A stretch of 64,000 bases of DNA. Source: Epithemia pelagica (taxonomy: Eukaryota > Protista > Bacillariophyta). The stretch covers positions 2,852,001 to 2,916,000 of the forward strand of contig OX337234.1 in assembly GCA_946965045.2 (NCBI GenBank), in the 5' to 3' direction. Under the pieces are notes generated by a model, which made no database searches, was not told the DNA's origin, and saw only the letters and a program-made list of their open reading frames with translations. Shown piece by piece: positions 20,085-36,101 of this stretch (within the stretch, counting starts at the first letter, position 1; each line of letters starts with the position of its first letter). The position numbers and the translations under genes are program-made.

Positions 20085-20400
20085 TAGGTTAATCTGGTGA
20101 GGTGGGAGTTGTTTCTAATAGTAGCAACTGTTGGGTCAAATACTCAAAGCATTTCTTTCTCCTACTTCATGGAGAACAGTTGTACTAGTCCCCCTTGAGA
20201 GATCGTCAATTAAAGGACAGGCACTTCGAACATTAGCACGGGCTTCCGCCGTGCTACGACTGACTTGAGTAGATGTACTAGAACGATTTTTACCGACGCT
20301 GACGGTCCCGCAGAATTGCCTCGGTCATCTGCATCCATCAAGCTATATGTTCATAGTTCTAGTTGTTGACTGTTGAGCAGGAAGCGGGCACTTACACTTG
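20085..20400. repeat. Duplicated 3' flank shared by paralogs 1 and 2 (second copy ~23648-23900)
   Basis: TTAATCTGGT(G/C)AGGTGGGAGTTGTTTCT...ACCGACGCTGACGGTCCCGCAGAATTGCCT is present in both places. Confidence 0.85.
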
Positions 20401-20408
20401 TGGCATGG

Positions 20409-21821
20409 TCATCGTCTACGACGAGAATGAGGGGTGGAGGTTTTTGGTTTTGCTTTCGATTGCTGGTTCGTAAGATTATTATTCTTGTAGAAATGCAGGA
20501 TTGTGTCAGAACTGACCGGTTGTGGCATGCCCGGTCTCGTCACCATGGAAGCAACTGTATTCCAAGAGACTGGACCATCCGTTTCTTGTAGAGTTTTTTG
20601 GATTTCGGGTAGCAGAGAATCCCCTTGTTCCATCCATTGATCTAATATAGCTTGGTAGGGAGCCTGTGCCTTTTTGTCTCCTTCAATCGCTTTCCATGCG
20701 TTTGACGCCTCGGCTGAACCAGCGCCAGGATGTTTGGAATGATAGTCCTTGATAAACACAAATCGTACGGTCCACATGGATTTGCGCTTCTTCTTCGAAT
20801 TCAAAATAGTCGTGCCCTTATCAGATCGTGTTTGTCGTTGCTTGGGTAGAGGATTTTGGGCAAAGTCCTTAAACCATCTATTAAGTGTTGTACGGTTAAC
20901 TCCCCACGCATGTGCGAGATAACGGACCTTGTAATCGTGAGGTAGGAAGGCAACATTGAGCATACAAGCCAGTTGTTTTTCTGAAGGAGAAAGATGAGGC
21001 TGCCTATTGCTGGACGATGGCTTGTAATTGGACACAAAGGTGTCATTCTTGTTCGTTTCATACTCGAGCTTTCTCAACCAACCGTAGTCATTTGTCTTGT
21101 ATAGGGTTTCAAATTTCGCAAAGGCCTCATCATGTCTATACCTGTTACAAAGATCGAGAAAGTATACTGTAGAATTCTCTGGAAGTCTAGGGGACGACGA
21201 CGGAGGCGAAGCAGTGGACTTTTTCGATGCCGAAGTACCATTTTGTCGTTGCTGTGACTTTTGATGTGGAGGGTCTTGATTCTTTTTCTTTGTCGGAGTG
21301 GTGGACTCTTTCGATGCTGCATCCATCACTCCTTCTCGCTTTTGGTCTAGTTGATGAGGTGGAGTTGCTGGATTCTTCATTTTCTTTGTCGGAGAAGTCA
21401 ACTCTTTCGATGACGTAGTCTTCAAACCATCATGTTGTTGTTGCTGATGTGGCGGTGGTGGTGGTAGTGACTTTTGATTCTTTGTCTTCTTCTTTTTGGT
21501 GGTGGTAGTGGGAATTAGGTCCTCCTCCACATGGCGTCCACGAGCCGTCGTCATTGTTTCAATCCTTACCGGGGTTTGTGGTGAATCATGATGTGGAGAT
21601 TCTTGTCCATGGTCATAGCACGAGACATGGGTGTCCTTTCCATCTGTTGTTCGGGGCATCGTTCCCGCCGCATTCTTGGTGTCTGGTGCTCGCTGTCGTT
21701 TCTGGTGTTTCGGTACGATTTCATCACCCCATTTCTCACGCGATGGAACATTGTCCACCGACAAGTGGTTTCGTTTCCTTTTCTTGAGATGAGCACTGGA
21801 GGACATACTTGTACTTTGCAT
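20409..21821 (-). CDS. HTH / HMG-like / HTH DNA-binding protein, paralog 1 (transposase-derived?)
   Basis: 470-aa ORF: LAHAWGVNRTTLNRWF (HTH), RQTRSDKG, FVFIKDYHSKHPG...AWKAIEGDKKAQAPYQA (HMG-like) and SWNTVASMV...VSSDTI (second HTH-like). Confidence 0.7.
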   Translation of the reverse strand: MQSTSMSSSAHLKKRKRNHLSVDNVPSREKWGDEIVPKHQKRQRAPDTKNAAGTMPRTTDGKDTHVSCYDHGQESPHHDSPQTPVRIETMTTARGRHVEEDLIPTTTTKKKKTKNQKSLPPPPPHQQQQHDGLKTTSSKELTSPTKKMKNPATPPHQLDQKREGVMDAASKESTTPTKKKNQDPPHQKSQQRQNGTSASKKSTASPPSSSPRLPENSTVYFLDLCNRYRHDEAFAKFETLYKTNDYGWLRKLEYETNKNDTFVSNYKPSSSNRQPHLSPSEKQLACMLNVAFLPHDYKVRYLAHAWGVNRTTLNRWFKDFAQNPLPKQRQTRSDKGTTILNSKKKRKSMWTVRFVFIKDYHSKHPGAGSAEASNAWKAIEGDKKAQAPYQAILDQWMEQGDSLLPEIQKTLQETDGPVSWNTVASMVTRPGMPQPVSSDTILHFYKNNNLTNQQSKAKPKTSTPHSRRRR

Positions 21822-22049
21822 GTATGGGCATGGATTGGATGTCTTTTGTGTTGTCTTCCTTGATGCAGACTTTTGGAGGGAGGAAAATGAGCAGGAGTGT
21901 CGGTTAATGTCCGTCCGTTGTCTGTTGTCTGTTGCATACTGCTACATCCTCAAAAAATGTGAGTTTACTTGGGCTAATGTCACACCTCATATTCTTGTCT
22001 TGTTTAGTTACGCATGATTTTGGTTGCGTTTAGAAAAGGAGCATGCCAA

Positions 22050-23470
22050 GACTTGCTTTTAACAGAGACATATTTCGATGTCGATTGGACTCTCACCTTG
22101 AACGGGCAGTGTCAATCAATCCAATCGGGAAGGTTGACAAGCAAATCTTCCGACTCGAACATGAGATTGAGAAAATCCTTGACGGTGGCGTCGTTATTCT
22201 CCTCCTTGGAACACCAATTGAATAGCTCACGGATAAACAGTGGTTCCATTGTACTGCTCGATGCTGAAGAGTCATCGCAGAAGCACGGCGCATTTTCGAA
22301 TGCAGCCACAAAAGTGTCGTTGGTGGCTGCTACTTTCCATATTGCTCGCTTTCCTAGTTCCTCGTCTAGAATCAAGCCACCGTCACCATTTTTTTACAGA
22401 ACAAAGTCCGACATTGAGCAAATCTTCGTCAAATTCTTCTGCAGCAAAAGACACAGTGCCACCCCAATAACAAGCTTGCCTAAACTTACAGGAAGTGGTT
22501 TCTTCAACATGAAAGGATCTTGGGCTTCAAGAAAAGAGTCCTTGATCCGTTCCACAAGTCCTTGGAGCACCCCCTCGTAGTGCTCATTTATCGCCATCTC
22601 TAATACTTCTTCCTTTGACAAGCTGGAATTTTCGTGCTCCAGTCTAGCCAGCCTGGTGAACAACCACACCCGCCAGCATCCAAAGGTTCGGCACATTTTC
22701 CAAAGCAACATCTTCAAGGTTGAGTGCCTGCTTCAGCTTCTCCGGAATCTCCTCCAGACAAACCATTGGGAAGTCAACTATGTCATGGGTCTGCTGGGGT
22801 TTTCCAAGGTCACTCTTGCAGGAAGCAGCACCGCCCAAGGCTCAACGCAGTTCCGGTAACGACCACACATTTGTTGCTTAGAGACAGCCTGCGTAAAAAC
22901 GGAGAGCCCATACCCCTTGTCTTTTCTGAGTCTTTGCTGCTGTGCCAGGACCCAGTATCAAGGACCTTGTAGGCCTCCCGAGCTCTATCGAATACAAAAA
23001 AGAAGTCCAACGTTGTCTCTATCTCCAATCGTAGCTTTTCCAACATGTCAAGTTTCCGTTTCTTCGGAGCCTGATACAGATATCTTGTCATCAGAACCAG
23101 TTCCGCAGACAGCTGGTAGGTGAGCCATAGAACTGGGGCGTCATTGTTTATTCCCACTCTTTTTCGGTGAAACGCATAGAGAATCATCGTCCGCGTCACA
23201 ACAAATGCATCAAGTGCTCTATCACATTTCCAGTTCTTCTCCGTGTTATTGATGTCTTCATTCAATATGGCATTGAGATCACCAACGAGATTGGTGAAGG
23301 AAGCATCCAACCCTCCTAGATCACGAAAGGTTGTCATGCCTTCGGGTTTTTGCGGATTCGAAGCGGTGATCAGAATGCAATAGCTTTTGCGGGCGGCGTC
23401 AAAGAAAGCTGAGGTCTTGCCACAACGGCTCACTCCCATCAAAATGTAGTTGTGACCGACTTTCTGACCC
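22050..23470 (-). pseudogene. Degraded P-loop NTPase gene resembling Crinkler-associated NTPases
   Basis: Collinear fragments in different frames: YILMGVSRCGKT (Walker A), FFFVFDRA (Walker B-like), VVVTGTALS, DIVDFP and TMEPLF. Several stops and frameshifts. Confidence 0.45.
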
Positions 23471-23895
23471 GACTTCCTGGAAAGTTCTTAACCCGCTGGC
23501 GTGGGGTTAGGTAGTGCAGGGCAGTAGGGACGAGTAAAACTGGTTTCGAGTGTGCCCCATGACTGCACGGCTGAACCATCCCAATTTCGGAGCCCAGAAC
23601 GGGAAAGATTTGTACGTGGCGATTGCACGACCCAGAACTGGTCCTGCTTAATCTGGTCAGGTGGGAGTTGTTTCTTATAGTAGCAACTGTTGGGTCAAAT
23701 ACGCATAGCATTTCTTTCTCCCACGTCATGGAGAACAGTTGTACTAGTCCTCCTTGAGAGATCGTCCATTAGAGGACAGGCACTTCGAACATTAGCACGG
23801 GCTTCCGCCGTGCTACGACTGACTTGAGTAGATGTACTAGAATGATTTTTACCGACGCTGACGGTCCCGCAGAATTGCCTTCGTCATCTACATGG

Positions 23896-24731
23896 TCATC
23901 GTCTACGACGAGAATGAGGGGTGGAGGTTTTTGGTTTTGTTTTCGATTGTTGGTTCGCAAGATTATTCTTCTGGCAGAACTGGCGGATTGCCTCAGAACT
24001 GACCGGTTGCGGCATGCCCTGTCTTGTCACCATGGAAGCAACTGTATTCCAAGAGACTGGACCATCCGTTTCTTGTAGAGTCTTTTGGATTTCGGGTAAC
24101 AGAGAATCCCCTTGTTCCATCCATTGATCTAATAAAGCTTGGTAGGGAGCCTGTGCCTTTTTGTCTCCTTAGCCAGTGGTAAAGCGTTTTGGGGGTAGTT
24201 CCCCATGCATGAGCAAGATAACGGACCTTGTAACAGTGAGGTAGGAAGGCAACGTTCAGCATACAAGCCAGTTGTTTTTCTGAAGGAGAATGCAGAGGCT
24301 GCCTATTGCAGGATGATGGCTTGTAATAGGACACAAAGGTGTCATTCTTGTTCGTTTCAAACTCGAGCTTTCTCAACCAACCGTAGTCATTTGTCTTGTA
24401 TAGGGTTTCAAATTTCGCAAAGGCCTCATCCTGTCTATACCTGTTGCACAGATCGATAAAGTACACTGTAGAATTCTCTGGAAGTTTGGGCGACGACGAC
24501 GGAGCCGAAGCAGTGGACTTTTTCGATGCCGCAGCACTAGTTTGTTGTTGCTGTGACTTTTGATGTGGAGGGTCTTGATTCTTTTTCTTTGTCGGATTGG
24601 TGGACTCTTTCGATGCTGCATCCATCACTCCATCTCGCTTTTGGTCTAGTTGATGAGGTGGAGTTGTTGGATTCTTCATCTTCTTTGTCGGAGAAGTCAA
24701 ATCTTTCGATGACGCAGTCTTCAGGCCATCA

Positions 24732-24764
<33 letters not shown>

Positions 24765-25153
24765 GGTGGTGTTGGTGGTGGTGGTAGTGACTTTTGATTC
24801 TTTGTCTTCTTCTTTTTGGTGGTGGTAGTGGGAATTAGGTCCTCCTCCACGTGGCGTCCACGAGACGTCGTCATTGTTTCAATCCTTGCCGGGGTTTGTG
24901 GTGAATCATGATATGGAGATTCTTGTCCATGGTCATAGCGCGAGACATGGAAGTCTTGTCCATTTGTTGTTCGGGGCATTGTTACCGCTGCATTCTCGGT
25001 GTCTGGTGCTCGCTGTCGTTTCTGGTGTTTCGGTACGATTTCATCACCCCATTTCTCGCGCGATGGAACATTGTCCACCGAAAAGTGGTTTCGTTTCCTT
25101 TTCTTGTGATGAGGACTGGAGGACATGCTTATACTTTGCATGCATTTATGCAT
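23896..25153 (-). pseudogene. HTH / HMG-like paralog 2, frameshifted by internal deletion
   Basis: Collinear with paralog 1 to LYHWL, then jumps directly to GGAGACAAAAAGG (~188 nt missing relative to paralog 4). The C-terminal part continues in ORF 23896..24120. Confidence 0.8.
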
Positions 25154-25724
25154 GGATTGGAGCTATTGGAGTTCTTCCTTCACTTGTTACTTACGATGCA
25201 GAGAGGGAGGAAAATGAGCAGAAGTGTCGGTTAATGTTCGTCCGATGTCTGTTGTCGGTTGTCGGTTGTCTGTTGCCGGTTAGGAGTACGAGTACCCCGA
25301 ACTACGAATAGGAATGGTATTGGTAGGGAATCCTGGACTCATTCTGCCCTCAGTGAATTATATATATCGATTGCAGTCTACAAGCATCAGACCCGGTGAC
25401 AAAAGTCCCGAACGTTCAACGGCAACCAAGGAACAACACTGAAGCTCCGCGACGGATCTAATCATTTTGTGGGACGATGCAACTCGGCGGGCGTGTGATT
25501 GGCGCTTGAGTCACATGGAGCGAAAGCCCTATGTAGTCAATTTCTGAAAGTCGGCATGCATGTGGAAAGCCAGCCGAGCTCAACAGAAGGTCCCTTTGTA
25601 AGCTTCCTTTGAAATCAATGATCGATGGTTTACACATACAAACAAGGCAGGCCCCAAAAAAGTGACACAAAGCCAACAACAAGACGAGCGATATCACGAT
25701 CAAGACCCGACTGCACACAGTAGC

Positions 25725-28052
25725 ATGACCCGTAGTAGTTTGCGCCGAACGAGTAGCACCCGCGACTATTATTGCCATCCCCCTTCTGCTTCATCCTCCT
25801 ACTCATCATCGTTATTGTGGCAGGAAGGTTCCCATCTCACTCGACAACAACAACATCCACAAACACCGTTGATTCCTGCTATTCAACCCTCTTCATCTTC
25901 CTTGACCTCTGCATCATCTTCCTCTTCTTCTTGGTCATCCTCGTTGCGTTTGATTCGAAGCTGCACCAGTGGAGAAAGTATCAAACAACAAGTTCACACC
26001 ACCACCAGCAGTCCTCCCTATTCCTATCACTACCACCCCGACGATAAGGAGAATCAGAATGACCCTAGTCGCCATCGCAATGGTGCTTCAATGTTAAACC
26101 ACCACCAAGACAAGAGAGAGAACAACAAAGTGAAGAGTTTCAAGCAGCAGCCGAAGAAGATAAAGAACCGATTGTCGAGTGGCAGTGGTGGTTCCAGTAC
26201 TAGTCGTGGAAGGATTCTTCAAAAAATGTTTGAAGCACGTAAAAGTTCCACCAACGATCGGCACAGTGATGATCATCCTCAAGGGTTGGTGATACTCTCT
26301 CCTGACCCAAGGCCATCGAACCAGCGTCTTCCTCGTGGAAACACGGTGGAACAAGATGACGATACAGTCGTTGTGCAAAATTTGCATCACCGCCAAGATG
26401 ACGATCATGAACAAAATCCAACGACAGCCAGGAGACCATCGAAAGAATCTGACGTTCCAATCGAACCCATGAACTTTGCTTCATGGCCAGTCTTATCGTC
26501 CCAGCAGGCATCCACGACTGCCATGGAATCGACTACCGAGTTCCAACAGCAACAACAAGAACCAGCACAGCCAAAACCAGCGAAGCAACCACAACAACCC
26601 CTTCCCCGTGTGAATTCATCCATGACACTGGCTCAACTCTACCAAGAAGCTGCTTGTCGAGGCGTTACCGTGCCTCAAGACTACCGTGAACCAGAACCGT
26701 CCGACACACAGAAGCAGAAACAACAACAAGACTTTCTGCTCCAACTCTTGATTCCTGGATCCATTCGGATTAGTGCCACACAAGTGGGAAAAGAGTATCA
26801 AGAGCTCCTTCACCAAATGCAACAGGAAACTGTCTTGCTTCAAACAACACAACAAGGCCAAGAAAAGGACCACCTTGCAGTACCTCCTGTCCCGATCCAA
26901 CCAGCGTTGGACCGCAAACGAAAGCAAGAATCGGATGGACCACTTCTGGATCAAAATCATCACCACCAACAACAGGAAGGTCAAGAGGAGAGACAGCGCC
27001 AGTCCATATCGTCGTATCGATGGGATCCACCAAGTACCTTCAAAAAACATATCATCTTTCCGGCCGATCCCAACACGCATCCGGATGGATCGCAGGGAAA
27101 AGGATATACCGTGTGGTGTTCCTTTGCCCCCGGAACTTCTACGGCACCCTTGCTAGAATTTGATTCTACATGGTCCAGTCCTCACGATGCCGCCACACGA
27201 GCTCGCTATCTCTACCATTGGAAAAATTGTTGGGGCTTTCCCAGTCAACCTCCTGTAGAAAGAGTGTTTGAAAAATCGCAGCGCTATGGAGTGCATCGTC
27301 CCTCGCACTCTTCGTCATGTTGGAGGGTGGGAGTTGTTACGGATGCCGAATTCGATAAGCTTCCCCACGCCACACGGAAACGACATATCTTTGACTTGTA
27401 TTCCGATAGTGAATTGGAAAAGCAAGAACAACAACAGGTAGACGAACACGAAGAAACAGAAAAGGATCACCAGACGACACGGGAACAAGAACAACAACAA
27501 GGAGAACAGTCCGTCGATTCAGTCTCATTCGAAACCAAGCAAGAACAAGAACGACAGACCAAATGGGATGCGACCAAACAATTTGAACCAGAAATCATGT
27601 TTCTCAGTGAAACGAATTTGCGTCTGGATGGCAATCAGGGAAATGGGTATACGGTTTGGTATACATTTGGCTTTGCCGATGACGACGATTGGGGCCTCGA
27701 GGAGGACGACCAGAATACGGCGGCAATAGAACTTAAACGAGAATTCGATTCGACATGGCCAACGGTAGAACAAGCCAATGCCAGGGCCCGCTTTTTGTTT
27801 TATTGGAAAAATTGTTGGGGATTGGAACCACACGAGTTGGAAGACATTTCGGCCAAGGGAGACAATATGGTGTTGGAATCGTCGACTCGCAATGGATTAT
27901 TATTGTACAGTATTCAATTTGAAGGAATGGATTGTTGGACGGTCGGTGTCGTGGAAGACCAAGAGTATCCCAAGCTCGAAGAGGATCGGAAAAAGAAGCG
28001 CAACAGCAGTAACAACACTGTTCCGGCCTGCTATACCCTGTCGTCGATATGA
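25725..28052 (+). CDS. Hypothetical protein with low-complexity N-terminus and two copies of an uncharacterised C-terminal domain
   Basis: Repeated DGxQGxGYTVW...EFDSTW...A..RAR.L..WKNCWG...CWxVGVV at about aa 470-565 and 655-765 of the track ORF. Confidence 0.7.
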   Translation: MTRSSLRRTSSTRDYYCHPPSASSSYSSSLLWQEGSHLTRQQQHPQTPLIPAIQPSSSSLTSASSSSSSWSSSLRLIRSCTSGESIKQQVHTTTSSPPYSYHYHPDDKENQNDPSRHRNGASMLNHHQDKRENNKVKSFKQQPKKIKNRLSSGSGGSSTSRGRILQKMFEARKSSTNDRHSDDHPQGLVILSPDPRPSNQRLPRGNTVEQDDDTVVVQNLHHRQDDDHEQNPTTARRPSKESDVPIEPMNFASWPVLSSQQASTTAMESTTEFQQQQQEPAQPKPAKQPQQPLPRVNSSMTLAQLYQEAACRGVTVPQDYREPEPSDTQKQKQQQDFLLQLLIPGSIRISATQVGKEYQELLHQMQQETVLLQTTQQGQEKDHLAVPPVPIQPALDRKRKQESDGPLLDQNHHHQQQEGQEERQRQSISSYRWDPPSTFKKHIIFPADPNTHPDGSQGKGYTVWCSFAPGTSTAPLLEFDSTWSSPHDAATRARYLYHWKNCWGFPSQPPVERVFEKSQRYGVHRPSHSSSCWRVGVVTDAEFDKLPHATRKRHIFDLYSDSELEKQEQQQVDEHEETEKDHQTTREQEQQQGEQSVDSVSFETKQEQERQTKWDATKQFEPEIMFLSETNLRLDGNQGNGYTVWYTFGFADDDDWGLEEDDQNTAAIELKREFDSTWPTVEQANARARFLFYWKNCWGLEPHELEDISAKGDNMVLESSTRNGLLLYSIQFEGMDCWTVGVVEDQEYPKLEEDRKKKRNSSNNTVPACYTLSSI

Positions 28053-28486
28053 AACGCCGTGCACTAAAGAACACAAACAGGCAGAGGTGGCCGTACGACT
28101 ATGGGCATCGGTCCACTAAAACAAACAGGGAACAACCCGAAAATGGGGAAAAAGGACAAAATGTTTCGTTAAACGTTACCAGTATAAATGTCATGTTGTA
28201 CAGATAGTCTTTTTGTTGTTGTTTCGAAGTGACGCAACGAGCAATCGTGCGGTTCCTATACAATTCGATGTGAACCATAAGCTGGGAACTCGACAGATAA
28301 ACAAACTAGGCAGTCAGAGAATACAGATCGGAGTATCGGTCATTGACGCCACTACGCTCGTAATGCTTTTATCGATCAGCAGAGTGGCCGAAAGAAAGAA
28401 TCCACAGTCAGTGTATCCTTTTATCCTCCTTGAGGACTCGCGACGCATCAGAATCCATTTGGGTGACAGTATCCAGCGTGTCACCG

Positions 28487-30211
28487 TCACTCCTCGCTGT
28501 CCGACGTGGTTCCCTTGGAAGCTCCATTGGGTTTGTCGTCGTTGTTGGATCCCAGTCGATTCCCAATCTGTCCCATCAGTCTCCTCGTGACTCGTGGAAC
28601 GGCACGAAGAGCTTTTTTGAATCGTTGGACCACTACCACCGTTTGGGAACGAGCTTGTTGCAAAAGGAGCTTGAGATTGGGAAATTGAATGGCCCCCGTT
28701 TCCAGTCCCTGTTGAATGAGACCGGCCACAAAGCCCAAGACCGCGCCAGCCAAAATGAGGGTCAGTTCATCCTCTTCAAAAATGGGATGAAGGACCCGTT
28801 CAAATTGCTCACTCGTCATGAGTTCCATCCGTTCCCGCAAGGTTTTTTCCAATCCCAAGGCTTGGTCCATGTAGGGATAAATCACTGGCACATGATTGGG
28901 CAATTTGGTCAAGGCCTTTTCGGCCGCCCGACGAATGACTTCGGGATTGGCGTACATGTGAAAACTGTTGGAAACTTTGGTGGCAAAGTTGGTAAAGTGT
29001 TGTCGAAACAGTTGTCCAAAGGCGGGTGAGGTTTCCGGGTCGGTCAAGAGGGACGTCCACAATCGTTCCGACGTAAGAATGTTGTTGGCAAAAAATTTGG
29101 AAAATTCGGCACTGACCGCCACTTGTCGTTTGAGAAATTGTCCCTGCAACACAAAGGGACCAATCGGTGTCGGATTGACGGGACAAAAGATCCATTTCAA
29201 GGCCAACCAATTGGTGGCCCAACCGACAATGGCACCACCGATAGACAAGGTCCAAGGATTTTCCCAAAAGAGGGCGACAATCATTTGAAGAATGCCCAAT
29301 AAAAAGCCAAACCACAAACCACTGTTGGTCAAAAAGTCTAGTTCGGCTTGACCACATTTGCGAAAGAGTTGTCCCAGCACAGCTCGATCTTGCATCATTT
29401 GACTCACGACACAATTTTGCAAACTAAAGATTTGGTCCACATTGGATTGCATCGACTTGACCAAATCTTGTAGAAATTGCGTATTCATGGATTGCAACGC
29501 CTTTTGTCCAGCGGCATCCATACCGGCATAGACAGCTCCCGGAATATCGGCCACAAACTTTTGTGGGACCAAATCTTGAACCACTTCCTTGACCAACTGC
29601 GGGACACGTGGTGCCAGTAATTTGGCCAGAACCTTGGGGTCCAAACGTCCAAAGACTTCTTGGACCGTCATGAGTTGAGAGGTGACCATGTGGACCATGG
29701 CCCGACTCATTTTGCGAGTTTTGCAGGGAACAATACCCTGCCATCCCAAAAAGCCCAAGGGTACTTCGTCGGCTCGCCAGAGCGAAATGCCACGATATTG
29801 AATGGGATAAAAGATCATTTGCACTGCCATGTAATTGGTAATCCATCCCACACAGGCCGCAATACAAGGAATGAGCAAATAGGTACCCGGACGTTTGCGA
29901 AATTTGGCCACAGCACGTCGAAAGGGGCCTGTCCAACCTCGATATGGTCCATCGACCGTGTCGTCTGGGCTGTTGGTGGTGGTCAAGGGAACATGATGCG
30001 TCGTCCTTCGCCGCTGTCGTTGTCGACGCTGTGGCTCGTCCATGGTGAGCCTCTGAAAGCTACCAGGTAAGTCTTGTCTTGTAAAGAAAGATGAAGAGTG
30101 TGACACCGGAACCAGAAATGAATGAGTGGGGCCCACAAAGCCTGTTACTGGCCATGCATAGCAGAGAGTAGCCACTACCATCCAAACGAGACGACCAGGT
30201 ATTGTCGTCAT
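28487..30211 (-). CDS. DUF445/UPF0754 family membrane protein, probably plastid-targeted
   Basis: VGWITNYMAVQMIFYP, LGWQGIVP, VGWATNWLALKWIF, FERVLHPIFEEDELTLILAGAVLG. Signal peptide followed by G-F-V-G (ASAFAP-like). Confidence 0.8.
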   Translation of the reverse strand: MTTIPGRLVWMVVATLCYAWPVTGFVGPTHSFLVPVSHSSSFFTRQDLPGSFQRLTMDEPQRRQRQRRRTTHHVPLTTTNSPDDTVDGPYRGWTGPFRRAVAKFRKRPGTYLLIPCIAACVGWITNYMAVQMIFYPIQYRGISLWRADEVPLGFLGWQGIVPCKTRKMSRAMVHMVTSQLMTVQEVFGRLDPKVLAKLLAPRVPQLVKEVVQDLVPQKFVADIPGAVYAGMDAAGQKALQSMNTQFLQDLVKSMQSNVDQIFSLQNCVVSQMMQDRAVLGQLFRKCGQAELDFLTNSGLWFGFLLGILQMIVALFWENPWTLSIGGAIVGWATNWLALKWIFCPVNPTPIGPFVLQGQFLKRQVAVSAEFSKFFANNILTSERLWTSLLTDPETSPAFGQLFRQHFTNFATKVSNSFHMYANPEVIRRAAEKALTKLPNHVPVIYPYMDQALGLEKTLRERMELMTSEQFERVLHPIFEEDELTLILAGAVLGFVAGLIQQGLETGAIQFPNLKLLLQQARSQTVVVVQRFKKALRAVPRVTRRLMGQIGNRLGSNNDDKPNGASKGTTSDSEE

Positions 30212-30686
30212 GGTAGTTCTTGCTGTGGCTCTGGGTATTCTCATTCTGACAAATGGCATCCACACAAGGCTCGTTTGTATTGTGAGTAATGGGTCCACAA
30301 TTCTGTTCAATTTCGAGAGGATGGATGTCGAACAATGTGATAGGAAAGATCAAAGGGATCGCTTTTGTGGTCCACCATTGGCAATATTGGCACATGTGTT
30401 GGTGGTGTCTTCCGCGTTCCGACTTCCGACTTCCGACATCCATCCGAGACATCACCGCACGTGACTCCAAGTACGTACATCCCGTCGGGACACAGCTACC
30501 CCTTTCGATTTGCCTCCAGCTTCCAGCTACCCTACTGCGCCTAGAGCACCCCCGACAACAGACAACGGACGAAAATTCACCGACACTTCGTCTGCCTTTT
30601 CTTCCAAAACCACAGTGTGACCACATTATGAGTTATGAGGTCACCGGAAGAAAGGGAAACACAACATTCATTCCATCCATACATGC

Positions 30687-32090
30687 ATGCTAAGTTTAAA
30701 TATGTCCTCCAGAATTCATCACAAGACAAAGAAACGAAACCGCTTTTCGGTGGACAATGTTCCATCGAACGAGAAATGGGGTAGCGAAATCGTACCGAAA
30801 CACCAGAAACGACAGCGAACACCAGACATCGAGGGTGCCGAGGTAACGATCCCCCGAACAACAAATGGAAAGGACTCCCATGTCTCGCGCTCTGACCATG
30901 GACAAGAATCTCCACATCATAGTTCAACACAAACCCCTACAACGATTGAGACATTGACAGCGGCTCGTCGACGCCCGGTGGAATCTCCCCCCACCACCAC
31001 CAAAAAGAAGAAGACAAAGAATCAGAAGCCACCACCACAACATCAACAACAACGTGATGGTCTGAAGACTGCGTCATCGAAAGATTTGACTTCTCCGACA
31101 AAGAAAATGAAGAATCCGGCAACTCCACCACAACAACTAGACCAAAAGCGAGATGGAGTGATGGATGCAGCATCAAAAGAGTCCACCACCACTCCGACGG
31201 AGAAAAAGAATCAGGACCCTCCACATCAAAAGTCACAGCAACGACAAAATGGTGCTACGGCATCGAAAGAGTCCACTGCTTCGCTTCCGTCTTCATCTTC
31301 CAAACTTCCAGAGAATTCTACAGTGTACTTTATCGATCTTTGTAACAGGTATAGACAGGATGAGGCCTTTGCGAAATTTGAAACCCTATACAAGACAAAT
31401 GACTACGGTTGGCTGAGAAAGCTCGAGTATGAAACGAACAAGAGTGATTCCTTCGTGTCTAATTACAAGCCATCGTCCAGCAATAGGCAGCCTATGCATT
31501 CTCCCTCAGAAAAACAACTGGCTTGTATGTTGAACGTTGCCTTCCCACCTCACGATTACAAGATCCGTTATCTTGCGCATGCATGGGGAGCCACCGCAAT
31601 CACGCTTCGCACCTGGTTTAAAAAGTTTGCCCAAAATCCTTTACACGTCCCAAGAAAGTCACGATCTGATAAGGGTATTACTCTCTTGACTTCGGAAAAG
31701 AAGCGCAAATCAACATGGACCGTACGATTTGTGTTTATGAAGGACTATCATTCCAAACATCCTGGTGCTGGTGCAGACGAGGCGTCAAACGCATGGAAAG
31801 CGATTGAAGGAGACAAAAAGGCACAGGCTCCCTATCAAGCTATATTAGACCAATGGATGGAACAAGGGAATTCTCTGCTACCCGAAATCCAAAAGACTCT
31901 ACAAGAGACGGATGGTCAAGTCTCGTGGAATGCAGTTGCTTCCATGGTGACGAGACCGGGCATGCCGCAACTGGTCAGTTCTGACACAATCCGTCAGTTC
32001 TACCAGAAGAATAATCTGACGCACCAGCAATCGAAAACGAAAACAAAAGCCAAGACCCTTTGTGGATCTCGTTCCCATGACAAGCGATGA
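30687..32090 (+). CDS. HTH / HMG-like / HTH DNA-binding protein, paralog 3
   Basis: 467-aa ORF collinear with paralog 1; HTH is LAHAWGATAITLRTWF. Confidence 0.7.
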   Translation: MLSLNMSSRIHHKTKKRNRFSVDNVPSNEKWGSEIVPKHQKRQRTPDIEGAEVTIPRTTNGKDSHVSRSDHGQESPHHSSTQTPTTIETLTAARRRPVESPPTTTKKKKTKNQKPPPQHQQQRDGLKTASSKDLTSPTKKMKNPATPPQQLDQKRDGVMDAASKESTTTPTEKKNQDPPHQKSQQRQNGATASKESTASLPSSSSKLPENSTVYFIDLCNRYRQDEAFAKFETLYKTNDYGWLRKLEYETNKSDSFVSNYKPSSSNRQPMHSPSEKQLACMLNVAFPPHDYKIRYLAHAWGATAITLRTWFKKFAQNPLHVPRKSRSDKGITLLTSEKKRKSTWTVRFVFMKDYHSKHPGAGADEASNAWKAIEGDKKAQAPYQAILDQWMEQGNSLLPEIQKTLQETDGQVSWNAVASMVTRPGMPQLVSSDTIRQFYQKNNLTHQQSKTKTKAKTLCGSRSHDKR

Positions 32091-32809
32091 CGATGCCACA
32101 GTTGGAAGTGCGTTTGTTTACCTGAATTTTCAACATGACTTTGGTCCTTAGTTGTCTATCAGAGAAAGCGTCTCATTTCTGCCCGTACTGGCCGTATAGA
32201 GGATCGGAGCGTTGCCCAATTAGCAAGCAACATCGAGATGAACTGAATCAAAAGTAGCATAGAGTGAGATTCGTCGTACTGTTCCGATGACATCTGTTTA
32301 TTTAGAATATGTGGGGTTCTGTGGGTCCTTACGCACGGCAGAAGAGGAACATTGATCTCGAGGCGGGTCTTGTCAAATTTATGCCCTCACGATCGAGCGC
32401 TACAAACCAATGATATTACTCCGGAAAGCAGGTATGGATATATCAAGTGATGCTTCGAGGTTTGCTTTTCATCTGCCGCTGAAGGGTCTCCCTGTTGCGG
32501 TCTTGGTGTGTCTGAAGGCATGACTCAAACGTTATACGTGCTTGCAGTTCCTTTGGTCCTGCTCTTTTCCTTTTGTTCTTCCTCTGTTCCTGCTTCTAGA
32601 AAAATGAGAAAAGTGCCCAAAAATGAGTTTTTTTGATATAGTTTGTGAGAATCATACGGATATTCCTCTAGCTATGTGCTAGTATCGATAGCTAGCGGAG
32701 TATATTGTCGGACGGACATAGCAGCATGAAATTCAAAACTGACAATGGACGAAAATACTAAACGACACATTCAAGGAAGAAACACAACATTCAATCCATC
32801 CATACATGC

Positions 32810-34240
32810 ATGCTAAGTATAAATATGTCCTCCAGAATTCATCACAAGCACAAGCAAAAGAAACGAAACCGCTGTTCGGTGGACAATGTTCCATCGACCG
32901 AGAAATGGAATGTTGAAATCGTACCGAAACACCAGAAACGACAGCGAACACCAGACACCGAGAATGCGGCGGTAACGATGCCCCGAACATTAAATGGAAA
33001 GTACTCCCATGTCTCGCGCTCTGACCATGGACAAGAATCTCCATATCATGATTCACCACAAACCCCTACAACGATTGAGACATTGACAGCGGCTCGTCGA
33101 CGCCCGGTGGAGGATGAGGATATCACAATAATTCCAACCACCAACAAAAAGAAGAAGACAAAGAATGCGAAGCCACTACCACCACCACCACAACAACAAC
33201 AACGACGTGATGGTCTGAAGACTGCGTCATCGAAAGATTTGACTTCTCCGACAAAGAAGATGAAGAATCCAGCAACTCCACCTCATCAACTAGACCAAAA
33301 GCGAGATGGAGTGATGGATGCAGCATCAAAAGAGTCCACCACCACTTCGACAGAGAAAAAGAATCATTACCCTCCACATGAAAAGTCACAGCAACGACAA
33401 AATGGTGCTGCGGCATCGAAAGAGTCCACTTCGCCGGCTCCTTCGTCGTCCAGACTTCGAGAGAATTCTACAGTGTACTTTATGGATCTTTGTAACAGGT
33501 ATAGACAGGATGAGGCCTTTGCGAAATTTGAAACCCTATACAAGACAAATGACTACGGTTGGCTGAGAAAGCTCGAGTATGAAACTAACAAGAGTGACTC
33601 CTTCGTGTCTAATTACAAGCCATCGTCCAGCAATAGGCAGCCTCTGCATTCTCCTTCAGAAAAACAGCTGGCTTGTATGTTGAACGTTGCCTTCCCACCT
33701 CACGATTACAAGATCCGTTATCTTGCGCATGCATGGGGAGCCGCCCGACAAACGCTTTGCAACTGGCTAAAAAGCTTTGCCCAAAATCCTTTACACATCC
33801 CACGAAAGTCACGATCTGATAAGGGTATTACTCTGTTGACTTCGGAAAAGAAGCGCCAATCAACATGGACCGTACGATTTGTGTTTATGAAGGACTATCA
33901 TTCCAAACATCCTGGTGCTGGTGCAGACGAGGCGTCAAACGCATGGAAAGCGATTGAAGGAGACAAAAAGGCACAGGCTCCCTACCAAGCTATATTAGAC
34001 CAATGGATGGAACAAGGGAATTCTCTGCTACCCGAAATCCAAAAGACTCTACAAGACACGGATGGTCAAGTCTCGTGGAATGCAGTTGCTTCCATGGTGA
34101 CGAGACAGGGCATGCCGCAACCGGTCAGTTCTGAGGCAATCCGCCAGTTCTGCCAGAAGAATAATCTTACGAACCAGCAATCGGAAACAAAAACTAAAGC
34201 CAAGACCCCTTGTGGATCTCGTTCCCATGGCAAGCGATGA
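32810..34240 (+). CDS. HTH / HMG-like / HTH DNA-binding protein, paralog 4
   Basis: 476-aa ORF collinear with paralog 3; HTH is LAHAWGAARQTLCNWL. Confidence 0.7.
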   Translation: MLSINMSSRIHHKHKQKKRNRCSVDNVPSTEKWNVEIVPKHQKRQRTPDTENAAVTMPRTLNGKYSHVSRSDHGQESPYHDSPQTPTTIETLTAARRRPVEDEDITIIPTTNKKKKTKNAKPLPPPPQQQQRRDGLKTASSKDLTSPTKKMKNPATPPHQLDQKRDGVMDAASKESTTTSTEKKNHYPPHEKSQQRQNGAAASKESTSPAPSSSRLRENSTVYFMDLCNRYRQDEAFAKFETLYKTNDYGWLRKLEYETNKSDSFVSNYKPSSSNRQPLHSPSEKQLACMLNVAFPPHDYKIRYLAHAWGAARQTLCNWLKSFAQNPLHIPRKSRSDKGITLLTSEKKRQSTWTVRFVFMKDYHSKHPGAGADEASNAWKAIEGDKKAQAPYQAILDQWMEQGNSLLPEIQKTLQDTDGQVSWNAVASMVTRQGMPQPVSSEAIRQFCQKNNLTNQQSETKTKAKTPCGSRSHGKR

Positions 34241-34620
34241 CCATGCCACAATTGGAAGTGCGTTTGTGTACTTGACATGACTTTGGTCCTTTGTTGTCTA
34301 TCAAAGGATGACCTTGATATAAAGCAGCGTCTCATTTCTGCCCCTTCTGGCTGTATAGAGGATGAAAGCGTTGCCCAAACAACAAGCAACATCGAGATGA
34401 CCTGAATCCAGAGTAGACGCGAGTGATATTCTTCCTACTGTTCCAATGATGTTTGTTTACTTAGAATACGTGGGTTTCTGTTGGTCCTTACGCATGGCTG
34501 AAGAGCTTTTGATTTGTAGGTGGGAACATTGATCGCGAGGCGGGTCTTGTCAAGTTTATGCCCTCGCGATCGAGCGCTCTAAACCAATGATATTACTGCA
34601 GAAAGCAGGTATGGATATAA

Positions 34621-36101
34621 TTAGGTGATTCTACGCTTCGAGGTTTTGCTTTTCATCTGCCGCTGAAGGATCTTCTTGTTGCGGTCTTGGTGTGTCTGAA
34701 GGCATGACTCAAATGTTTCACGAGCTAGCTGTTCCATCTCTCCCTCCTGCTCGAATGTCACCTCACCCAGTTCTTCGAGCTGTTTGTCACTGATCGGAAG
34801 CATTTCATCCCAATTGACTTCCCGGAAGCAAAAGATGTTCAGATCCCGTGTACCATTATTCGGGCACTCTCGATCTTTGCCTGCATCGTTCCTTCTTCCT
34901 GGGCCTTTGCTTCTTTAACTTGTGTCCGATTCATAAGCAAATTTACGATCCCTTGGGCGAAATACCGTACGCCTTCCATCACGAACCGAAGAGAAAATTC
35001 ATCGTTGTTTTCATGAAACTCAACTTCAATTCCTCCTGTGTCCTTTTGCTCTTCGGCAGCAGGGACTTGACCGGACCCTCCACAGCGAGCTATGTGCGAA
35101 CATCCAGAAACCTTCACGTATATGGCATCGCAGTACTTGCATTTTCTATACATGTTTCTCGGGTCACGGGGATCAGTCACATCCCACGTCAAGAGCTTGT
35201 TCGTTGTCTTGATGAAATCTTGAAGCTTCAGAGACAAGTGCACCCCTGCCTTACCATATACCAGGTTCTTTTGTGAATCAGAAGCAAGGTTTTCGTAAGC
35301 ATCACGGAAAATGGTGGTCTTTTCTTCTTCAACCATCTTACGGGTCTTGGCTTGGGTCACGACGATACACACATCGGATTCATAAGTCTTTCCATTTTTA
35401 ACAACACTGTGGCAAGCATCACTCGCAGCCTGAAGCTTGGCAAGGACCTTGTTTATGGGTTTGTTGTACTTTCTGATGCCAGACAATGACGAGACTGTGG
35501 CAAGCTGGGATGGGGTCACTTCATAATTGCGGGGTGCTTGAAGCGTGGATGCGATAAACGTCACAATTTCCTCTCCATTCGTGTCTTTTCCAACCATGGT
35601 AATGTGATTGTTCGGAATTCCGAGGTATTTGGTCAGTGCGGTGACAAATTGAGCTTCATCATAGCCGTCTTCTGGATTTGCTTGATCAATGTGGGTCACG
35701 ATAACCCGAACATCATCGCTCCCGAGAAAGTCCATGATAAGTTCAACATTCTTTCCCACATTGTCAGCACGACTCTCGTATTTGACCACTGCATATACTC
35801 CGGATAATGCTGTGTCTTCCAATGCCAGTTTTTGTGCCCCAAGATGCTCAGCAACACATTCAGACGAACCAAAACCAGGAGTACCAATAACGAAAAGATT
35901 ATGCCGCTCGTTGGAGCCAGACTCAATCGCTCTTGTACAACTCGAGGCTCCCGCGCCTGATGCATGTTTCGTTCCACACACTTTGTTGAGCACACGGCTT
36001 TTTCCATGACCCAAAGGGCCGAGAAAAGCAACGACACGGAAAGCAGCCGTCATGCTTCGACAAGTCTTGAACGTGATAAAACAAGCACCCACTTTATGCA
36101 T
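34621..36101 (-). pseudogene. AIG1/MMR_HSR1-like P-loop GTPase with C-terminal Cys cluster; probably disrupted
   Basis: G1 GPLGHGKS, G2 SCTR, G3 appears as GTPG (expected DTPG), G4-like VTHID, then CKYCDAIYVKVSGCSHIARCG. The C-terminal part (ECPNN...VNWDEMLP...) is in a different frame after ~34880. Confidence 0.55.

Follow-up and report, generated by a model that had tools for sequence, protein, structure and literature searches.

The window analysed here, a 64,000-nucleotide stretch of the genome of the diatom Epithemia pelagica (GenBank assembly GCA_946965045.2, contig OX337234.1, positions 2,852,001 to 2,916,000), contains a cluster of four paralogous copies of one gene, whose proteins are 78-90% identical and carry four different versions of a 12-residue patch within a predicted helix-turn-helix (HTH) unit. 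Our data suggest that the cluster is a putative host gene family recognising transposon ends. A previous sequence-only reading of the window had described four paralogs; four copies are indeed present, but copy 2 is a frameshifted pseudogene and the intact genes are three. In copy 2, a frameshifting deletion of 188 nt lies directly after the patch (junction 24171/24170), removes the linker and the HMG-box-like module, and is present in the second haplotype too. The features of the cluster are listed below, where ORF denotes an open reading frame, and HTH1 and HTH2 the two HTH units of the DNA-binding domain.

20409..21821, minus strand: copy 1, intact ORF of 470 aa, DNA-binding-domain-only transposase derivative; allele at locus L011 of the second haplotype nearly identical
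20865..20900, minus strand: copy 1 patch, VNRTTLNRWFKD, predicted turn and recognition helix of HTH1
23896..25153, minus strand: copy 2, pseudogene, with an ORF at 23993-25153 (386 aa) and a detached tail ORF at 23896-24120
24167..24199, minus strand: copy 2 patch, TTPKTLYHWLR, the final residue being created by the deletion junction
30687..32090, plus strand: copy 3, intact ORF of 467 aa; allele P0016 is 96% identical
31503..31634, plus strand: HTH1 of copy 3, three predicted helices, model residues 74-117 (AlphaFold model ma404de3bf13b)
31590..31625, plus strand: copy 3 patch, ATAITLRTWFKK, model residues 103-114
31674..31901, plus strand: apparent HMG-box-like module of copy 3, between the two HTHs, model residues about 131-206
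31869..32042, plus strand: HTH2 of copy 3, model residues about 196-253, predicted third helix also variable among paralogs
32810..34240, plus strand: copy 4, intact ORF of 476 aa
33740..33775, plus strand: copy 4 patch, AARQTLCNWLKS
30656-32551 and 32779-34735 (span 30656..34735), plus strand: tandem duplication blocks with copies 3 and 4, 89% identical
20089-21934 and 23648-25261: inverted counterpart blocks of copies 1 and 2

By a six-frame search of the window's own assembly (60.5 Mb, 23 contigs), residues 165-440 of the window proteins were found to be 50-58% identical to five relatives contained within ORFs of 800-830 aa, which belong to a transposase family. This homology begins near residue 165-205 and ends just after HTH2, and at the DNA level it extends over about 600 bp, covering the DNA-binding domain only. 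No catalytic segment was detected at the cluster, where a search with the full 800-aa transposase matched only residues 126-373, and no terminal inverted repeat (TIR) was found in the window at up to 1 mismatch, the short matches being at chance level. Downstream of copies 1 and 2, at a distance of about 165 nt, an 11-nt match to the inner TIR motif was considered as a TIR relic and rejected, since a 3' end would require the opposite orientation and the match does not exceed the chance level. The N-terminal region of about 200 residues is rich in K, P, Q, and T, carries basic runs resembling nuclear localisation signals, and had no match elsewhere in the genome (six-frame search); moreover, a Pfam search of the four window proteins returned nothing above threshold. 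In this context, the window genes are DNA-binding-domain-only derivatives of a Tc1/mariner-like transposase family rather than transcription factors of the usual kind. The absence of a catalytic domain sets them apart from transposases, and they differ from element-encoded repressors of the KP type because they have no terminal repeats, occupy a fixed host locus, and possess a new N-terminus.

The parent elements, represented by T5, T6, and T7, are DNA transposons. T7 is an element of 4.29 kb present in three copies that are at least 99.5% identical (two of them 100%); its TIRs are perfect and 44-46 bp long, and each of the three insertions, in three different contexts, is flanked by a TA duplication. 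The TIRs of T6 measure 48-51 bp. Among 10 aligned full-length transposases, including one named from the diatom Epithemia, residues D422, D584, and D623 (T6 numbering) are invariant, giving a DD39D signature within the motifs H-M-D-E-K-W, Q-x-D-x-A-G-P-H, and N-S-P-x-x-N-x-x-D. When a 49-sequence profile of the catalytic half was compared with the PDB, the top match was the Mos1 mariner transposase (E 0.02), with all three D motifs aligned, and Sleeping Beauty was retrieved at E 1.3. Furthermore, DDE_3 was identified in 78 of the 100 nearest named ESM-Atlas clusters, and the family size was 1888 sequence clusters at E <= 1e-3. An AlphaFold model of the full 800-aa transposase (10 sequences) reached a mean predicted local distance difference test (pLDDT) score of 53, with the catalytic half at low confidence. 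The parent elements thus appear to constitute a divergent Tc1/mariner-type family unrecognised by Pfam, with the catalytic fold tentatively assigned by motif alignment, and, because the three T7 copies are at least 99.5% identical, the family is considered active in this genome. A search of the literature for diatom mariner-like elements, DD39D, HMG-box transposases, and diatom domesticated transposases returned nothing specific.

About 108 TIR matches were identified genome-wide, against 2 in a reversed-pattern control. In these ends the outer and inner boxes are conserved and a core of ~20 bp is variable, defining at least 7 core subfamilies, and most ends occur as inverted pairs 1.3-1.7 kb apart, corresponding to non-autonomous elements. 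Three transposase lineages each have their own TIR core and their own helix 3 of HTH1, and copy 2 of the window shares the K-x-L-Y-x-W pattern with T7. Two of the TIR-core subfamilies (about 12 and about 10 ends) had no autonomous transposase copy in the assembly. The following loci are representative.

L014:3588-7879 (contig 6): T7-type example, transposase intact, 809 aa
L012:3561-7209: example of the TIR family

The two T7 copies that are 100% identical (L015:2083-6383 and L016:4052-8352, contig 2) have a common frameshift that leaves ORFs of 554 and 359 aa; therefore, a broken copy moved recently, presumably mobilised in trans. As a further observation, the transposases have an extra N-terminal beta-rich domain, modelled at residues 1-80 of L006:1114-3516 (model mee4f242aaa03, pLDDT 60-75) with strands at 10-13, 23-33, 56-63, and 69-74; the window genes are without it. 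On another contig, the internally deleted transposase P0013 has a deletion that begins inside helix 3 of HTH1, a point similar to that at which the copy 2 deletion begins, which may be a coincidence or reflect a shared fragile site.

The DNA-binding domain was modelled with AlphaFold from residues 200-467 of copy 3 and a 42-sequence domain alignment (A3), yielding a mean pLDDT of 89.2, and about 97 at the patch. The predicted order comprises a short helical bundle (13-51), HTH1 (helices at model residues 74-86, 93-101, and 105-117), a basic linker carrying the family-invariant R-K-x-R-x-D-x-G, four helices (138-208), and HTH2 (215-222 and 233-253). YLAHAWG corresponds to model residues 96-102. 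The patch (residues 103-114) takes in the last part of the turn together with the initial ten residues of helix 3; helix 2 runs up to AHAW, a G-x-x turn follows, and the variable residues lie on one face of helix 3. In this helix T107, L108, W111, and F115 (i, i+1, i+4, i+8) are fixed, whereas positions 105, 106, 109, 110, and 114 vary, a spacing as expected for a buried versus an exposed face. The patch is accordingly modelled as the turn and recognition helix of HTH1, with DNA contact predicted, in agreement with the sequence-only reading, which had assigned this segment to a recognition helix and noted that its structural residues are fixed and its exposed positions vary.

As a whole, the domain is predicted to be a bipartite HTH domain with two three-helix HTH units, and its structural matches include CENP-B and transposase HTHs. 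HTH1 matched CENP-B domain 1 (Z 4.7, root-mean-square deviation 2.6 Å over 57 residues) and also superposed on a bacterial transposase HTH, and one family member matched HTH_Tnp_Tc3_2 at E 0.003 without passing the Pfam threshold. A Foldseek search of the whole DNA-binding-domain model against the PDB gave nothing below E 0.7, probably since it consists of several small helical domains, and a shape search of the Atlas gave weak matches, with template modelling (TM) scores up to 0.33, transposase HTH clusters being among them. Concerning the middle module, a 42-sequence profile retrieved about 25 HMG-box chains from the PDB (E 0.003-1, best 0.003), and a shape comparison had HMG boxes in about 22 of its 50 best matches (Z 4.3-5.5); single sequences against Pfam reached HMG only at E 0.016-0.05. 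The module therefore seems to be HMG-box-like, on two independent lines of evidence that are each weak alone. Single-sequence and 10-sequence profiles against the PDB gave blank results or chance matches, whereas the deeper 42- and 49-sequence profiles recovered the HMG box and Mos1, respectively. The module between the HTHs is present across the whole transposase family (alignment A3), and no literature on an HMG-box fusion in a Tc1/mariner-type transposase was found.

The four patches each follow the invariant YLAHAWG and translate exactly as the sequence-only reading had given them, at the coordinates listed above. Its count for copies 3 and 4 was reproduced as well: 12 of 36 nt and 7 of 12 codons differ within the patch (by Nei-Gojobori, 10.5 non-synonymous and 1.5 synonymous differences), against 5 of 240 nt before it and 5 of 240 nt after it. 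In fact, 7 of the 21 amino-acid differences between these two copies across the 259 transposase-homologous codons fall inside the 12-codon patch (permutation p = 0.0004), and the clustering persists in a whole-gene permutation test (p = 0.02). Non-synonymous divergence (pN) is 0.38 in the patch versus 0.019 in the framework (p = 1.8e-9), whereas synonymous divergence (pS), at 0.18 versus 0.057 (p = 0.11), is not elevated. A compensated frameshift was considered as the source of these differences; judged by eye on the alignment, it is possible for the last three codons (A5 run) but is not more parsimonious than substitutions. The claim of near-identical surroundings stands for copies 3 and 4, but the flanks of copy 1 are 89-100% identical to theirs and the N-terminal 200 residues differ freely. 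Between copy 1 and copies 3 and 4, patch pS is saturated (0.77-0.81 versus 0.17-0.19 in the framework, p < 0.001) and remains raised for ~35 codons downstream, and nucleotide identity in the patch (60-64%) falls as low as that to transposons; to transposon T5, the copy 1 patch is 71-73% identical. The patch of copy 2 is nearest to that of copy 4 (8 of 30 nt differ, versus 14 of 30 to copy 1). A further, smaller concentration of differences among paralogs covers the third helix of HTH2 and the basic linker, and the HTH2 helix type is common to copies 2 and 4, unlike copies 1 and 3.

The whole cluster was recovered in the same order from a second assembly or haplotype (ENA contig, locus L011), where the patches are the same as the four of the window apart from one residue each in copy 3 (F>L) and in the pseudogene (G>V). 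The same patches being present in both haplotypes, the patch is not a mutating spot, and the term hypervariable, as previously applied to it, has to be abandoned. Allelic differences frequently match another paralog: in copy 3 this applies to 25 of 30 (with tracts at codons 1-56 and 88-93 matching copies 1 and 2), in copy 4 to 15 of 26, and in copy 1 to 7 of 9. Of the informative sites in the flanks, 33 favour the grouping (1,2)(3,4), and the two other groupings have 5 and 2. Gene conversion is thus still at work among the copies, also across the inverted pairs, and accounts for the near-identical flanks. Since the synonymous divergence of the copy 1 patch is saturated, this patch reflects divergence that is old and has been retained, rather than rapid local mutation, and the simplest reading of the allelic and paralogous comparisons is that the patch is an island of older, retained, and partly selected divergence amid homogenised genes. 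The transposase origin, the ongoing gene conversion, the saturation of synonymous divergence in copy 1, and the pseudogene had all been missed by the sequence-only reading.

Regarding selection, the framework (221 codons, patch excluded) showed pN/pS of 0.33-0.43 (Fisher p = 0.034 to 1e-5), its differences having arisen after the copies gained their shared truncated form, and it is under purifying selection. Furthermore, the paralogs show no variation at those positions of helices 1 and 2 whose entropy across the transposon family exceeds 3.3 bits, which argues against a simple relaxation of constraint, and three ORFs (467-476 aa) are intact in both haplotypes. In poly-A RNA libraries, one contig of 254 nt matches copy 4 exactly (33951-34204), and contigs of 138-152 nt, lying over the patch, are near-identical to copy 3 (31491-31750); these are no more than suggestive of expression of the two copies.

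Regarding the surroundings of the genes, the cluster has as neighbours a DUF445 membrane-type protein gene (28487-30310, minus strand) and an MMR_HSR1-type GTPase gene (34839-36101, minus strand), both syntenic in the second assembly and useful as anchors when sister species are searched for the cluster. The interval that separates the gene pairs contains, at 25662-28052 (plus strand), an ORF of 796 aa without a Pfam match, which has a two-fold internal repeat ending in W-K-N-C-W-G and long Q-, S-, and H-rich stretches. In the second haplotype (L011:11405-18454), copies 3 and 4 are separated by ~7 kb, versus 0.7 kb in the window, and the extra DNA encodes ORFs of 282, 906, and 588 aa without Pfam matches.

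Altogether, we regard it as probable, although well short of certain, that DNA-binding domains captured from the transposase family have been kept with different recognition helices, as putative binders of transposon ends. Gene conversion would homogenise the copies and selection would hold four (now three) recognition helices apart, because each protein would read a different DNA site, the most likely sites being the variable cores of the transposon TIRs (at least 7 subfamilies). Mariner transposases recognise their ends through two N-terminal HTHs, and the rate of transposition is governed by competition for binding to these ends (PMC3687335). With different helices on one side and several end variants on the other, the proteins would be expected to occupy different end variants and, having no catalytic domain, to leave them uncut; once bound, they could compete with the transposase or modulate it, or else serve as transcription factors at scattered end relics. 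For binding to transposon ends as such, we would put the chances at even or slightly below. The idea of anti-transposon repressors, already raised in the sequence-only reading, becomes more concrete because the genes derive from the DNA-binding domain of a transposase family that is active here; nevertheless, a specific repressor engaged in an arms race is a tentative proposal, which we consider rather unlikely. Equally doubtful is a version in which the proteins are decoys copied from the transposase, each helix being tuned to one TIR-core subfamily, including subfamilies without their own transposase, with conversion renewing the scaffold and selection protecting the helix. If this were true, the cluster would represent a transposon-derived, sequence-specific anti-transposon defence evolving like an arms race.

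Several observations weigh against selected end binders, and most of them are equally expected if the genes are neutral relics, that is, decaying transposase fragments in which the patch differs because mismatch density blocks conversion tracts, with no selection involved. Both haplotypes carry copy 2 as a pseudogene; the low-complexity N-terminal stretch of ~200 residues diverges freely, with dN/dS of 0.9-1.4, as in neutral evolution; the RNA support consists of a few short contigs from libraries possibly containing DNA; and no ortholog of the short form outside this species was found in protein collections, so that the family is young. To these are added the patch dN/dS between copies 3 and 4, which is 2.65 but, with 12 differences, not significant alone, and the Pfam transposase models, which stay below threshold on the parent proteins. 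We consider neutral decay improbable, since it accounts poorly for three long ORFs intact in two haplotypes, for the significant framework constraint, for changes confined to the exposed face of helix 3 when an equally family-variable surface of helices 1 and 2 is unchanged, and for an excess of non-synonymous without an excess of synonymous change in the patch of copies 3 and 4. Targeted hypermutation of the helix, by a diversity-generating retroelement (DGR) or otherwise, is far less credible still and is refuted by the comparison of alleles: only the dense local clustering of changes speaks for it, whereas the second haplotype has the same patches in spite of numerous allelic differences in the flanks, all bases are affected by the changes, the genome is eukaryotic, and no template repeat turned up, although no search was aimed at a reverse transcriptase or a template repeat. 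The rejection of a DGR mechanism in the sequence-only reading was therefore well founded.

The remaining alternatives accept the transposase origin. Each patch could be a short conversion tract from a different diverged transposon, the divergence having been made in the transposons, and the sequence-only reading had named a divergent donor with matching synonymous divergence as grounds for refutation. For copy 1 the synonymous divergence does match, as it is saturated in the patch and raised ~35 codons downstream, and this patch is closer to T5 than to copies 3 and 4; the K-x-L-Y-x-W pattern common to copy 2 and T7 points the same way. However, a donor search for each patch across the whole 60.5-Mb assembly found only the paralogs themselves, nothing being better than the paralogs (72-89%) for any patch region; four different donors would be required, a recent tract would be expected to exceed the 71-73% identity seen over 45 nt, and the difference between copies 3 and 4, almost wholly non-synonymous, does not fit. 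We thus judge such donor tracts to be an unlikely source of the patches. A similarly low likelihood is assigned to domesticated transcription factors for host genes, with paralogs sub-functionalised to different promoters and no role in transposon control. This would share the origin and selection data of the end-binder explanation, could use the new N-terminal region with its NLS-like basic runs as an effector region, and has precedents in CENP-B, for which a structural match was computed, and the PAX paired domain; on the other hand, this is a very young family confined to one species, its N-terminal region is free of constraint, and the parent transposons coexist with many matching TIRs, so that the ancestral targets are still present.

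Binding of transposon ends by captured domains would be of interest beyond this locus. The DNA-binding domains of transposases have become host proteins repeatedly, as in CENP-B, the PAX paired domain, and THAP proteins, and to our knowledge nearly all such proteins are ancient, so that the early steps are not visible. Here, derived genes, mobile parents, and about 108 matching ends in several variants are found in one 60-Mb genome, and the paralogs are distinguished almost exclusively by the helix that reads DNA, making it approachable to ask whether a DNA-binding protein recently derived from a transposase works against the parent element, and how binding specificity stays distinct under gene conversion. 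Moreover, the analysis exposes a large mariner-like family (at least 1888 clusters) unrecognised by Pfam, whose DNA-binding domain seemingly includes an HMG-box-like module.

When compared with known systems, the parents T5, T6, and T7 resemble Tc1/mariner elements (ITm: Mos1, Hsmar1) in the TA duplication, TIRs, a putative DDD triad, and the N-terminal bipartite HTH, and they share with Mos1 the aligned motifs D-E-K-W, D-x-A-x-x-H, and S-P-x-x-N-x-x-D. They differ in that they are, at about 800 aa, twice the size of Mos1, with 162 residues between D1 and D2 and 39 between D2 and D3, and in having the extra beta-rich N-terminal domain and the HMG-box-like module between the HTHs, with no Pfam threshold match; the window genes, for their part, are without the entire catalytic half. 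Truncated-transposase repressors, such as the KP and 66-kDa proteins of the P element and dominant-negative mariner copies, are alike in that the end-binding domain is kept and catalysis is gone, so that they could compete for ends (PMC3687335). Such repressors are, however, element-encoded, as internally deleted copies or splice variants with TIRs, whereas the window genes have no TIRs, possess a new N-terminal region, are grouped as four copies at a fixed position among host genes in both haplotypes, and are distinguished from one another by their recognition helices.

Similarly, CENP-B, the fission-yeast Abp1/Cbh proteins, and the PAX paired domain are host genes derived from a transposase bipartite HTH. 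These are ancient, widely conserved, and of single specificity, whereas the window cluster is young, species-restricted, located beside parents that are still active, and diversified in the recognition helix. KRAB zinc-finger clusters, which track transposable-element families, offer another likeness, as tandem paralogs in which the DNA-contacting residues diverge, the scaffold is conserved, and the presumed targets are transposable elements; in contrast, the window proteins have an HTH fold, a domain taken from the transposase of the putative target itself, only four copies, and no recognised effector domain. By analogy, the window genes may be likened to domesticated transposase DNA-binding domains and, in their logic, to KRAB zinc-finger clusters, and they are distinct from these precedents in being young, clustered, diversified in the recognition helix, and co-resident with active parents.

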